Source: Isurus oxyrinchus
Taxonomy: Eukaryota
Assembly: GCA_026770705.1 (NCBI GenBank)
Contig: JANJGN010000121.1
Location: 1,178,001-1,242,000, forward strand
Reading direction: 5' to 3'
Length of the DNA: 64,000 nt
This document shows, piece by piece, positions 134 to 63,952 of this stretch. Position numbers and translations under genes: made by a program. Every line of letters begins with the position of its first letter. Within the stretch, counting starts at the first letter, position 1. A model generated the notes under the pieces. It was given only the letters and a program-made list of their open reading frames with translations. It had not been told where the DNA came from and ran no database searches.

Positions 134-275
134 CCAGGACCTGTCCGACTGCTCGCCTGGGGAGGAACTGCCCACACGCTCTGTTTGGGCTGAATGACCT
201 CTTCCTGTGCTGCTCCCTCTGTGTGTTTAATTAGAAAGGGTTGATGTGTCTCTGTGAGTCAAAATGAGGAAGTTG
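134..275 (-). promoter_or_regulatory. Promoter and non-coding exon 1 of Siglec-like paralog A (gene continues left of window)
   Basis: Near-identical to exon 1/promoter of genes B (21034-21175) and D (35625-35764). GT donor at 133-132, intron-1 homology at 1-133, TAATTAAA TATA-like box and GAGGAAGT ETS/PU.1 motif at 266-273. Confidence 0.75.
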
Positions 276-789
276 GAACAAAGTGAGAGAACAGCACTTT
301 GCTGTGCACTGTCAGTAAACCCTGTGTCTGTATAAGAATATAAGAACAGAACAAGTAGGATCAGCTGGACACCCTGACATTTCCCCTCCTTATATTCCAT
401 CCACTCATTTTTTTACCCACTCTTTGAAACTATTTATCTCCCTCTGCAGCCTCTTTGTGTCCTCCTCACAACTTGCTTTCCTGCCCAGCTGATATATTTC
501 CTACCTATCTTCACCATACAGTCAGAAAATCTGCCTACAGTACAGTCAGTCCCTTCATCCAAGTCACTAATGTAGATAGTGAATAGTTGAGGCCTCAGCA
601 CTGATCCCTGTGGCTCTCCACTAGTTACAGTTAACCAAGCTGAAAATCACCCATTTATCCTGGCTCTCTGTTTCCTGTCAGTTCGCCAGTCCTCTATCCA
701 TATTAATATATCCCCCCCAACACCATCCAATTTCACCCTGTGCAGTATCCTTTGATGTGGCACCTTAACGAATGCCTTTTGGAAATCCA

Positions 790-1325
790 GTGTCATGAAG
801 ATATATTTGTGTGTAACGTGTGCTTGGAAATAATATCTTCAAATAGAATTCTAGTGGTGGTCCATGTATAGGTGTGTGTCTGGGTGTGTCTTAATTGGAT
901 TAAAGCCAGCTGGTCTGTGTGCTTTGATGTTTAGTAGTTTTGAGATGTTAATTGGGTGAATTGTGAGGAGAACAGTAAATTGTTCATTTGCAATTGTTGA
1001 ATAAACCATTCAAGACTGGGGGTAAAATCTTGCACCTAGTTAGAAGGAGCCAAAAGATGTGTTTTTTCTTGAACTTACTAATGAAATTGGTGCTATGAAA
1101 GGGGGTTTTATTGTTAGAAGAGCTGGAGTTCAGAAGACCTAGTGATACAATGGAAAATTTACATTCAAAGGGAAAGCTAGCTATATAAAGGAAGGAGTTT
1201 GTGTGTGTGAGGCAGGAGCATTTCAGACCTAACCAGCCTGTAGCCTCCAACCAACTTGCAAAGGAACCTCATTCGGAATTCGTAATGTCAAATGTGCTTT
1301 GCCTGGTGTCTATATTATGTCAATG
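790..1325 (+). mobile_element. Solo-LTR-like interspersed repeat, truncated by a LINE
   Basis: Begins TGTCA; homologous to elements at ~4390-5136, 7470-8208 and 56060-57215. Confidence 0.5.
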
Positions 1326-1329
1326 GTTT

Positions 1330-2020
1330 TATCCCTAATTACCTAGAGAAGGTGGTGGTGAGCTGCCTTCCTGACCCTCTGCACTCCATGTGGTGTAGGT
1401 ACACCCACAATGCAGTTAGAGAAGGAAGTCCAAGATTTTGACCAAGTGGCAGTGAAGGGACGGCGATATATTTCAAAATCAGGATGATGTGTGGATTGGA
1501 GGGGAACTTCCAGGTGGTGCTGTTCCCCTATGCCTGCTGCCCTTGTCCTTCTCGATGGTAGAGGTCGTGGGTTTGGAAGGTGCTGTTGAAGGAACCTTGC
1601 TGAGTTGCTGAAGTTCATGTTGTAGATGGGACACACTGCTGCCACTGTGCATTGACGATGGAGGGAGTGAGTGTTGCTGTGGTTGAGGGACAGCCAATCA
1701 AGCGGGGCTGCTTTGTCCAGGGTGGTGTCGGGCTTCTTGAGTGTTGTTGGAGCTGCACTCATCCAGGCAAGTGGAGAGTATTCCATTCACACTCCTGCCT
1801 TGTGCTATGTCGATGAAGGACAGGATTTGAGGAGTCAGGAGGTGAGTTACTCACCGCAGGATTCCCAGCCTCTGAGCTGCTCTTGTAGCCACAATGTTTA
1901 TGTGGCTGACCCAGTTCAGATTCTCGTCAATGGAAACCCCCAGGCTTTTGATATTCGGGGATTCAGTGATGGTGCTGCCATTGAATATCAAGGAGAGATG
2001 ATTAGATTCCCTCTTGCGTG
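1330..2020 (-). mobile_element. LINE 3' fragment (reverse transcriptase C-terminus)
   Basis: ORF 1343-1786 MEYSPLAWMSAAPTTLKK..DKAA; same family at 5475-5930, 8560-9010, 44010-44460, 46930-47375, 50640-51690. Confidence 0.8.
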
Positions 2021-3284
2021 CATTCAGATTAAGAACCTTTCTGTCTTTTCCCCATTTCCCCTACTCTGACCTTATTTGCTGGGACACTGGTTGGTGCTGG
2101 TTTCAGTCTCAGTTTGTCTCAGTTGCTCACACTCTGGCCTCTGTCTCGAGACTGATATTCCCTCTTGGTAGTGACAGTGATAGGGGTGTTGGGGAGGGTG
2201 TGGATATTGACCCCACTGCTCCCCCTCCCCCACTCCGCCATTCTTTCCTGGGAGATCCGCCAGGATCCTTGTTCCAGCTGCGATGGGCAGCCCTTCCACA
2301 CTTTCCTGTCGGTCCCGCACTTCATGTGTAAAAGCGCTAAGTTAGAGCAGGGATGGGGAAATGAACAGGGGGCGTGGAATGAGTGTGGAGGTCTCACAGC
2401 CAGAACTGACCCTGCCCACAACTCTGTGAAGGGGGGGAGGTTTCACCAGCTCTCTGTCTTAACAATATCGTAAACACAGGGTGAAGATTGTCCCCATTTC
2501 CTGTATCTTAATAATATTGTAAAGACAACTGGGAGATGTCCTGCAGTCTCTGAGAAAGAATTTGGTGCACCTACAGCACCACCACTGGCAAGAGAGTGTA
2601 AGTACAGTGTGACATGTTTACATGGGAAATTTTCATGATAAATGTGGACACAGGAATTTTTGATAATTTGGTGGGGAAATGCAATGATATGAAATAACAG
2701 ATTGGAGCAGGAAGGTTGTCCTAGAGTAAGATGTTTAATAAAAATATATCTGTACAGAGTTATCTGGGCATTTCAATCCCTTGTGACAATAAATGTAATA
2801 TCATAGAAAATGCAAAGGCTTCTTGTAATCTATCACAGAATAAACAAGTTGCAGAATTCAGAAAGCACTTTCTGAAATGTTAACAAGGTTCAGTGACATC
2901 ACATTTCTGCTAATGACTATTCGGCCATGTTGGCTGCACGTAGTCAGGCAGTCCCTCGGTTGTGATGTGTCCACACAGCTGGACTGGGATGCATCAGCAT
3001 CAAAGGACATGCTTAGTTGTTGCTGTGCAATGCATTTATTGCGAGCCTGTTGCACACACGCCCTGTCGAAGGAGCCTCCGTGTTTCCATTCTGAATTGAG
3101 GCAGATCAATATTACTACAACAACTTGCATTTATATAGCACCCATAATGTAGCAAACTATCCCAAAGCTCTTCAGGGGATTGTTAACCACATATAAATCC
3201 ATCTCTGAGACAAATAATGAGATATTAGGGACAGGTGACAAAAAGCTGAGTTAACAAAGCCAGTTAATAAGGACCATGTTAAAG

Positions 3285-3445
3285 GAAGAGAGAGAGAGAG
3301 AGAGAGAGATAGAGAAGCAGAGGGAGAGAGATAGAGAGATCGAGAGAGAGGGACAGACAGAGAAGGAAAGAGAGATAGAGAGACAGAGAGAGAGAGAGAC
3401 AGAGAAGGAGAGAGAGATAGAGAGACAGAGTGCGAGAGAGAGTGA
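3285..3445. repeat. (GA)n-rich microsatellite in the 3' UTR (paralogous copies at 6230-6335 and 46520-46625)
   Basis: Direct inspection. Confidence 0.9.
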
Positions 3446-62460: not shown

Positions 62461-62729
62461 GACTAAACTCACTGAGAGAAAAAGCTGGACACCCAGCACA
62501 GGGAGTGAGGGAACAATGAATTTTTTGCCGTCTTTGGTGAATCAGTTTGCGATGTCCCTTCTCAATCTCTCCTTCCTTGTCTTGACGTTAGTTTATTCCC
62601 TGGGGCTGTTTAATTCCCTGAAAGGTGCCATTTAACCACAAGTTGTTATTGTTTGAGGAAGAAACGCTGGGGACAATTTATGAAAAAGTCTCTGTCTTTA
62701 TCATTTTCCATTTAGATGAGGAACTGAAG

Positions 62730-62775
62730 ATGGGAGAGGTCGGTCTGATACTGATCTTCATCAGCTTGCTGCAAG
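62730..62775 (+). CDS. Gene E leader exon coding part (MGEVGLILIFISLLQ)
   Basis: Acceptor ttttccatttag at 62715, 46 nt, phase-1 donor, hydrophobic signal ending LLQ-G like the paralogs. Confidence 0.85.
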
Positions 62776-63099
62776 GTACAAATTCATTACTGATCGGAAC
62801 TCAGGGAATTGGATTCTTTCCTGGAGTGAGGAAGTGAATATTTAATTTTAGAGAAAAGGGTTAGTGATCACACAGAGAGTGAGTGAATAGCGAGTCAGAG
62901 AATTTAGCAAAAGCAAAAGTCTCATACGGACTCGAAACACCAACTCTGTTTCTCTCTCCACAGATGCTGTCAGACCGGCTGAGTTTTTCCAGCATTTTCT
63001 GTTTGTGCATCAGAGAGCTTGTTTCAATAGGAATGACAGTGCATTTATATAGCACCTTTAATGCAGTAAAACATCCTTATTGCTTCACAGGATTCCCCC

Positions 63100-63560
63100 A
63101 CAAGGGGTAACATCCCCTCAGCATCCACCCTGTCAAACCCCCCACCACCTCAGAATCTTATATGTTTCAATAAGATCACCTCTCATTCTTCTAAACTCCA
63201 ATGGATACAGGGCCCAACCTGCTCAACATTTCCTCATAAGACAAACCCCCTTCATCCCAGGAATCAGCCCAGTGATCCTCCTCTGAGCTGCCTCCAATGC
63301 AGAGTCTATCCCTCCCTAAGTAAGGAGACCAGAACTCTACACACTGCTCCTGATACAATCTCACCAACGCCCTGTACAGTTGTAGCAAGACTTCCCTCCT
63401 TTTATACTCCATCCCTTTGCAATAAAGGCCAACATTCCACTTGCCTTCCTCATTCCGTGCTGTTCCTGAATGCTGACTTTCTGTGATTCATGTACAAGGA
63501 CACCCAGATCCCTCTGTACCGCATTCTGCTGCCTCTCTCCATTGAAGTAATATTCTGCTT
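63100..63560 (-). mobile_element. CR1 LINE fragment
   Basis: EYKRREVLLQLYRALVR...CVEFWSP. Confidence 0.8.
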
Positions 63561-63595
63561 TTTGATGTCCTGTCTCTTCCCTTGTTGCCTTTCAG

Positions 63596-63952
63596 GAGTG
63601 ACGTCAGAGGGATGGTCTATGAAGGCGCTGTCTCGGAGGGCCATCAGCAGCTCTTGTGTGGTTATTCCGTGTAGCTTTGACTTTCCTTCCCACTCTTACA
63701 CAGCACTGCACGGAGCTTGGTATAAATATTGGTATAGATGGAAATATACCATCACATACACCAAAGATCCCAACTATGCGATGGCCACATTCGTGGGACG
63801 TGCTAAAATAATCGGCGACTTGGAAGGGAAGAATTGTTCGGTGAGGATTGACAGTCTCAGAGCTGAAGATAGTGATGTGTATTACTTTTATGTGGATGTG
63901 GAGGGCTACACAGATCACACTTTTACACAACCAGTCCAACTCCAGGTTCTTG
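63596..63952 (+). CDS. Gene E divergent Siglec/sialoadhesin/MAG-like V-set exon (GVTSEGWSMKALSRRAISSSCVVIPCSFDFP...GAWY...FVGRAKIIGDLEGKNCSVRIDSLRAEDSDVYYFYVDV...VQLQVL); gene continues right of window
   Basis: 357 nt open, ttgcctttcag acceptor, gtaagt donor, Siglec-type CxxxPC and NCS cysteines; absent from the ORF track. Confidence 0.88.

Follow-up and report, generated by a model that had tools for sequence, protein, structure and literature searches.

Genes and domains of the locus

The window analysed here is the whole stretch of 64,000 nucleotides (nt) from Isurus oxyrinchus (assembly GCA_026770705.1, contig JANJGN010000121.1, positions 1,178,001 to 1,242,000). Very probably it is part of a large receptor cluster of the Siglec family in a shark, nearest to lamniform models, in which genes B and D are intact, unit C is decayed and gene E belongs to an older lineage. 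An earlier sequence-only reading had proposed a probable shark origin and an expanded cluster of Siglec-type genes whose tails bear CD33-like motifs. Both the cluster and the origin were borne out, the best protein matches to the window exons being Carcharodon and Cetorhinus models.

For the exon map the window was searched by tblastn, first with its own immunoglobulin (Ig)-like open reading frames (ORFs) and then with full-length homologues taken from a search among 1.84 billion representative proteins; searches and folds were run on single exons. The full-length homologues (55-74 % identity) come from more than 10 elasmobranch species. AG acceptor and GT donor borders were found in every modelled exon and the Ig exons are all phase 1-1. 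The phases of the transmembrane (TM)-to-cytoplasmic and cytoplasmic-to-tail exons are compatible and reproduce the protein sequence of the shark homologues.

Gene B on the minus strand and gene D on the plus strand form an inverted pair of paralogues, and their identity of 87-94 % makes them too diverged for haplotypes, hence real paralogues. Both are intact and are predicted to encode type I membrane receptors composed of a leader, V-set domains (one in D, two in B), one or two C2-type domains, an uncharged TM segment, a short cytoplasmic exon and a tail with Tyr motifs (Table 1). The cytoplasmic and tail exons form a 2.9-kb cassette present in two tandem copies in each gene; the tail cassettes were doubled before the B/D duplication, because cassette a of B resembles cassette a of D more than an a cassette resembles a b cassette. 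Five Siglec-like V exons, C2-set and TM exons and four tail exons were confirmed in the window. No C2b exon of gene B was found in the assembled sequence, but one could hide in 11338-11802; runs of N at 11338-11599 and 11631-11802 fall in the C2a-TM intron of this gene. The TM exon of D (SVLLAEIFIFICV) carries Glu where that of B (SVFLAGIFIFICV) has Gly, which puts an acidic residue in an otherwise uncharged TM segment, and the great-white second-type model likewise has an acidic residue (FFIFECVRK).

The membership of the V exons in the Siglec family, as judged from sequence, predicted fold and the Cys/Arg hallmarks, is solid. In a phmmer search against the PDB the V-set exon of gene D (V_D) matched Siglec-5 best (E 3e-15), followed by Siglec-8, MAG, sialoadhesin, Siglec-10 and CD33, up to E 1e-13, and in Pfam the V exons matched V-set and, above its cutoff, Ig_CD22. 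The AlphaFold (AF2) model of V_D reached a predicted local distance difference test score (pLDDT) of 89.7, and among the Foldseek matches listed ranks 1-47 were all Siglec V-sets with TM-scores of 0.80-0.86. The essential F-strand Arg is kept in YLFRIE (V_D), YFFRIE (the second V exon of B, V_B2) and YLFRTD (the first, V_B1), which align on YFFRVE of Siglec-5, and the Siglec Cys pattern of V_D (CxxxxC on the B strand, Cys on the E strand, none on the F strand) is seen in SCVQIPC and DCSLII, aligned on LCVLVPC and NCSLSI of Siglec-5. C21, C26 and C84 are invariant across alignment A3 and the C2a exon adds an extra Cys in CTFNTTC, the disulfides themselves being predicted.

Within the Siglecs the PDB search placed the V domain at approximately equal distance from CD33-related Siglecs, MAG and sialoadhesin. 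The top 150 library matches held few mammalian proteins, such as the CD33-like P0089 (36 % identity, E 1.5e-19; identified as a mammalian CD33-like protein by its match to human CD33, E 3e-88), and the non-shark relatives looked up by name were bony-fish 'MAG-like/Siglec-5/CD22-like' models. The window contains no non-Siglec genes flanking the cluster that could be compared with the mammalian one. In the V tree V_B1 grouped with Cetorhinus V1 (support 98/83) and V_B2 fell with V2-type sequences.

All four tail exons are open, with 82 codons each and TEYAQI or TEYTQI near the end before the stop. Of the CD33-related-type tails reported from the sequence alone, the distal motif was confirmed in four of four tails, but the true immunoreceptor tyrosine-based inhibitory motif (ITIM), LLYVNI, occurs only in the distal tail of D, which thus combines a proximal ITIM with a distal TEYxxV/I as CD33-related tails do. 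The remaining three, both tails of B and the proximal tail of D, have LLYANP plus TEYxQI: the YxN is kept and the hydrophobic residue at +3 of the ITIM is lost. Models from other sharks read LLYANINF, ILYANINF or LLYINVNF followed by TEYAQIRFQ, and the LLYANPQVF variant is also present in the great-white 'CD33-like' model. The order and spacing of the tail motifs resemble those of P0089, with a weak pairwise similarity (E 0.026). An AATAAA hexamer follows the stop after 567-606 nt in three tails and after 1068 nt in the distal tail of D.

Table 1. Receptor exons, exon remnants and minisatellite arrays of the window (positions counted from its first nucleotide)
Feature	Position	Strand	Basis and remarks
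Gene B leader exon	20544..20583	-	MIGKSYFLLSLLQ, phase-1 GT donor; tblastn with great-white P0015, 13/13 identity
Gene B V-set exon 1 (V_B1)	14181..14546	-	V1 type, Arg kept in YLFRTD; Pfam V-set E 2e-13 and Ig_CD22; AG/GT
Gene B V-set exon 2 (V_B2)	12995..13363	-	V2 type, YFFRIE; Pfam; AG/GT; both borders at RNA-like joints
Gene B C2-set exon (C2a)	11970..12266	-	CTFNTTC motif; 95 % identity to great-white P0024; RNA-like contigs join it to V_B2
Gene B TM exon	9582..9678	-	uncharged TM; 91 % identical to Cetorhinus P0003; splice sites
Gene B short cytoplasmic exon, cassette a	8345..8426	-	tblastn, splice sites
Gene B tail exon a	6535..6783	-	LLYANP...TEYAQI, stop TGA; AATAAA 570 nt downstream
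Gene B short cytoplasmic exon, cassette b	5260..5341	-	tblastn, splice sites
Gene B tail exon b	3646..3894	-	LLYANP...TEYTQI, ends RFKRN like the great-white CD33-like model; 82 % identical to P0024
Unit C leader exon	28321..28360	-	intact; tblastn, splice sites
Unit C V-set exon	27015..27390	-	broken; V1 type in tree; alignment A1
Unit C C2a exon	25859..26155	-	premature TAA 26046-26048; alignment A2
Unit C C2b remnant	25383..25535	-	3' half of exon only
Arg-bearing TM terminal exon	23568..23707	-	..ILILGIRAVIF..ERQTVKGSRQTV, stop; 77-82 % identical to P0006/P0026 C-termini
Gene D leader exon	36209..36248	+	tblastn, splice sites
Gene D V-set exon (V_D)	37171..37539	+	YLFRIE; AF2 pLDDT 89.7; best Foldseek matches Siglec V-sets
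Gene D C2a exon	38483..38779	+	Pfam C2-set_2; matches domain 2 of MAG and CD33; splice sites
Gene D C2b exon	43024..43305	+	I-set-like; intact GT donor a few bases before gap starting 43314
Gene D TM exon	43775..43871	+	SVLLAEIFIF, Glu where B has Gly; splice sites
Gene D short cytoplasmic exon, cassette a	44593..44674	+	tblastn, splice sites
Gene D tail exon a	46074..46322	+	FLYANP...TEYAQI; splice sites
Gene D short cytoplasmic exon, cassette b	47512..47593	+	tblastn, splice sites
Gene D tail exon b	49154..49402	+	ITIM LLYVNI and TEYAQI; 83 % identical to Cetorhinus P0003
Orphan tail exon, second tail type	31160..31276	-	..DLYANC-x7-VYGNL, stop; AG acceptor; 55 % identical to great-white P0015 (XP_041037180) C-terminus
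Second-type cytoplasmic exon remnants	21034..21114(-), 134-214(-), 29171-29239(-), 35678-35779(+)		tblastn
Gene E candidate leader exon	62730..62775	+	MGEVGLILIFISLLQ, GT donor; read from sequence alone
Gene E V-set exon	63596..63952	+	Pfam V-set; MAG E 6e-15; Tyr replaces essential Arg
33-bp minisatellite	4041-4239, 6927-7312, 21817-22219, 28783-29086, 34791-35386
33-bp minisatellite	45710-45928, 48785-48976, 58356-59109, 60991-61546

Splicing of the V exons and predicted ligand binding

Contigs from four sequencing runs were placed on positions 11803-14700 at a likeness of at least 93 %. In the RNA-like runs X1 and X2, which come from one sample, the coverage of exons was far deeper than that of introns. 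The joint 12266->12995, linking V_B2 to C2a, was found in both X1 and X2, and the joint 13363->14181, linking V_B1 to V_B2, in one contig of X1; each falls exactly on the predicted exon borders with GT..AG on the minus strand. One X1 contig, ending at the C2a donor (11970), continues for 53 letters, and the 30 shown match 23678-23707 at 30/30. As these positions are the start of the Arg-bearing TM exon, a C2a-to-Arg-TM transcript exists. The shark Siglec-type family is real and expressed, and the V_B1-V_B2 joint gives a first RNA-derived hint that duplicated V exons are spliced in series. At 13269 and 13261 (X1 and X2, respectively) contigs with loose ends switch from the second V of B to a variant encoding ..PSCLENQPRGG.., which is the C-C' sequence of the Cetorhinus V2 domain and suggests that a close paralogue or an allele has another binding loop.

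The earlier proposal of combinatorial splicing in gene B, two V exons times two tails, gained nothing from these data, in which the only V-V evidence is tandem inclusion. If the two V exons were mutually exclusive they would, with the two tails, give four combinatorial isoforms. Both V exons are indeed intact, of phase 1-1 and provided with good splice sites, skipping of either keeps the reading frame, and two joints exist beyond those listed above. Yet the sole V-V junction among the listed joints includes both exons, Gnomon models of Cetorhinus, Mustelus, Scyliorhinus and Hypanus have 2-4 V domains in series, and V1 and V2 are orthologous to the V1 and V2 of Cetorhinus, which suggests that the double-V layout has been maintained. 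Mutual exclusion is therefore unlikely, and serial use of the V exons is the reading preferred here.

B and D would bind sialylated ligands via the V-set Arg. After phosphorylation of the Tyr residues their tails would recruit SH2 phosphatases or adaptors, the distal tail of D working as an ITIM plus an immunoreceptor tyrosine-based switch motif (ITSM)-like motif, as in CD33, and the LLYANP tails via YxN and the ITSM-like motif. The Siglec fold might instead serve Ig-superfamily receptors for another ligand, without sialic acid binding. Loss of the Arg in gene E and the strong variability of the C-C' loop and G-strand regions between copies speak for such a function, which nevertheless seems rather improbable for B and D: the Arg, the three-Cys pattern and a CxxxxC aligned with Siglec-5 are retained in each of V_B1, V_B2 and V_D, and the structures nearest to the V_D model in the Foldseek search are sialoside-bound Siglecs.

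Unit C, other exons and repeats

The sequence-only reading regarded unit C, with an ectodomain highly similar to those of B and D and an Arg-bearing TM exon downstream, as the activating partner. The Arg-bearing TM exon is present as a single copy in the window; its translation ends ..SGGEILHVILILGIRAVIFLVAVVITIAGVCVWERQTVKGSRQTV before the stop, leaving a tail of 12 residues. It is 77-82 % identical to the last ~40 residues of two full-length Siglec-like models, one from Scyliorhinus torazame, ending ..ERRTVKGSRQTV, and one from Chiloscyllium punctatum. Since the exon is kept at the protein ends of two other shark orders, the charged-TM, short-tail ending is a conserved module of the family, and its assignment to the activating type within this family was upheld.

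The ectodomain fared differently. The V exon of C is interrupted by CGA->TGA at 27353-27355 and TAT->TAA at 27299-27301, and by a frameshift immediately ahead of the Arg codon, where the T-run 27080-27086 has one T too many. A third stop arises in C2a (TTA->TAA at 26046-26048), and in C2b unrelated sequence takes the place of the 5' half. With three stops, one frameshift and half of C2b missing the ectodomain is not an intact look-alike. Nor is its V exon a copy of those of B2 and D: it is ~84 % identical to V_B2 and V_D, with C2a alone reaching 97 %, and the tree places it with the V1 type. As assembled, unit C is a pseudogene, a decayed copy of an activating-type member, so there is no working activating/inhibitory pair within the window. 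Intact Arg-TM paralogues elsewhere would pair with an adaptor that bears an ITAM (immunoreceptor tyrosine-based activation motif), such as DAP12 or FcR gamma; a literature search on DAP12 in cartilaginous fish yielded nothing usable.

It might be argued that C is a working partner of B and D and that its stops are assembly errors or mark a null allele. C has kept an intact leader, Arg-TM exon and full set of splice sites, the C2a->Arg-TM splice was seen in RNA-like data, and null alleles of activating partners can segregate, as human SIGLEC16 and SIGLEC14 demonstrate (PMC5701461, PMC4042635). Five independent lesions, among them three stop-creating substitutions and one replaced half-exon, make a working C hard to credit, and the C2a->Arg-TM contig may stem from a paralogue elsewhere in the genome. 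We therefore retain unit C as a pseudogene.

When the V-to-C2a stretch was compared in 100-nt blocks, identities of 97-100 % alternated with 63-86 %, and purely intronic blocks (12842-12941 and 12270-12369) were among the former. This mosaic fits patches of gene conversion combined with a V domain that has diverged strongly in its C-C' and G-strand parts. Exons would be continually reshuffled by unequal crossing-over and conversion between the repeats. Positive selection on V_B2 versus V_D is not claimed, as the ratio of nonsynonymous to synonymous substitution rates (dN/dS) of 1.39 rests on ~6 synonymous changes. That the repeated units are artefacts of collapsed or duplicated haplotypes or of mis-joins at gaps is barely credible: eight N runs lie in the 64 kb and no contig spans the whole V1-V2-C2a stretch, but the difference of 6-17 % between copies is far greater than that expected of alleles, the V1-V2 spacer and the V_B1 exon border are matched with 0-1 differences by DNA-like contigs of run X19, and the same layouts recur in chromosome-level assemblies of other species.

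Several points weigh against the view of the window as a Siglec cluster with two intact genes, a decayed copy and expressed V exons. With contigs placed at the threshold given above and C2a exons of B, C and D 97-98 % identical, the joints prove splice patterns for the family, not for exact copies, and they are not assignable with certainty to B or to C. The frameshift of unit C falls within a homopolymer and may reflect an error of assembly; such an error is less likely to account for the three nonsense substitutions or the replaced half of C2b. Ligand binding and signalling of B and D are predicted from sequence and fold only. The dN/dS among the tail exons is ~1, so some tails may be decaying. 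The N gaps may hide exons; no exon model crosses an N run, and the domain counts are lower bounds.

The tail exon at 31160-31276, without a matching TM or upstream exon in the correct order in the window, had been described as an orphan ITAM-like tail. The exon is real, but the first Tyr of its YANC-x7-YGNL does not fit YxxL/I, and the exon represents a conserved second tail type, also similar to library proteins P0007, P0067 and P0034 and occurring in Chiloscyllium and Mobula models. Remnants of the exon preceding the second-type tail in the shark homologue genes sit within duplicated 5' flanks; all three leader exons have one 430-800 bp upstream, and a further copy lies at 134-214. The remnants appear to have been carried along in these flanks. 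The copy at 134-214(-), at the window start, suggests that the next gene of the family begins just outside the window.

Gene E had been called divergent and Arg-less, and rightly so, because in its YYFYVD a Tyr aligns with the Arg of MAG YYFRGD ('yyfyvd' on 'yyfrgd'). In the tree its V exon falls with bony-fish MAG/CD22-like genes on a long branch, and the window ends after this exon. By its sequence gene E, of which the window holds the 5' end, is assigned to an older lineage that is MAG-like and lacks the Arg.

A 33-bp minisatellite lies beside almost every receptor module, in at least nine places, where it reads as long HSLSTDPPTVQ-type ORFs. As a possible substrate of unequal recombination it may drive rearrangements. 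Retroelement reverse transcriptase fragments (Pfam RVT_1) lie at 39321-41700(-), in the C2a-C2b intron of D, and at 50510-51133(+), downstream of D; a gag/pol-like block with no Pfam match occupies 32193-34449(-), between the orphan tail and the 5' flank of D. Just downstream of the TM exon of B a ~440-bp stretch (about 9102-9542), without counterpart in D, holds a 184-bp tandem duplication (9183-9550, two copies, 92 % matches). The V_B2-C2a intron contains at 12482-12675 a very high-copy short repeat, in which the contig depth rose up to 100x that of neighbouring bins in all four runs; an ORF in this repeat resembles a TM segment and is not one. The TM-looking ORF 12364-12657(+), which overlaps the repeat, was rejected as a receptor exon, as were 52387-52623(-) and 59928-60182(-), none of the three matching any family protein. 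The hydrophobic reading at 5104-5544 and its copies is a wrong frame of intron or repeat, the true TM exons being those at 9582-9678 and 43775-43871.

Comparison with known Siglec systems

The family is already predicted by the NCBI pipeline in more than 10 sharks and rays. The Gnomon shark and ray models belong to the same family and share its exon modules (leader, V, C2a, C2b, TM, tails and the Arg-TM ending) at 66-95 % per exon; examples are XP_041037179 of Carcharodon ('CD33-like'), XP_078389734 of Cetorhinus ('Siglec-12') and XP_072326180 of S. torazame ('Siglec-12'). Generated automatically and unreviewed, they are named inconsistently: Siglec-5/8/10/11/12/13/14/16, CD33-like, MAG-like and hemicentin-like. 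The literature searched on Siglecs in sharks, elasmobranchs and cartilaginous fish yielded no description of a shark cluster and nothing beyond a brief mention in the paper on the whale-shark genome. A 2020 study concluded that fish genomes hold only Siglec-1, CD22, MAG and Siglec-15, without inhibitory CD33-related Siglecs (PMC7226832).

Tentatively, cartilaginous fish may possess a large Siglec family with CD33-type tails, a dedicated activating Arg-TM ending conserved in at least three shark orders, multi-V heads, duplicated cassettes and turnover by conversion and pseudogene formation, a picture that is plausible but still short of probable. If it is true, the pairing of inhibitory with activating Siglecs is either older than the divergence of cartilaginous from bony vertebrates or a product of convergence, and either way the published view of fish without CD33-related-type Siglecs is contradicted. 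The shark cluster would then place the beginnings of such regulation far earlier or reveal convergence, and would offer a tractable system for asking how sensing of sialic-acid 'self' and pathogen mimicry shaped the immunity of early jawed vertebrates. The window's own news is more modest: two intact inhibitory-type genes, a dead activating copy and an RNA hint of serial V use. To the known models it adds this dead copy, the evidence of tandem V-exon use and, in the LLYANP tails, a derived ITIM-less tail variant.

With the CD33-related Siglecs (CD33, Siglec-5, -7, -8 and -10) the shark genes share the F-strand Arg and Cys pattern of the V-set followed by a C2-set with CxxxxxC, a proximal LxYxxI-NF and a distal TEYxxI in the same order as in P0089, and the clustering, duplication and fast divergence of the genes. 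They differ in that no one-to-one orthologue emerged, the V domain being equidistant from MAG and sialoadhesin too and the non-shark relatives looked up by name being bony-fish models, in having LLYANP in place of the ITIM in three of the four tails, and in the tandem duplication of the cytoplasmic and tail cassettes.

Paired Siglecs have been described in mammals, and in primates also their gene conversion, including conversion by a pseudogene (PMC4042635, PMC5701461). As in the pairs Siglec-5/14 and Siglec-11/16 of these studies, inhibitory-type and charged-TM, short-tail members lie in one cluster here, with patches of near-identity that fit gene conversion, and as with human SIGLEC16P the activating member is also a pseudogene. 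Unlike in these pairs, the V of the Arg-TM unit is of the V1 subtype, different from the V of D and the second V of B, and the unit is dead.

The serial arrangement of V domains has a further counterpart. Human Siglec-12 carries two V-set domains, and two N-terminal V-sets in series are likewise indicated for gene B by the V_B1->V_B2 splice, with the difference that both shark domains keep the Arg.

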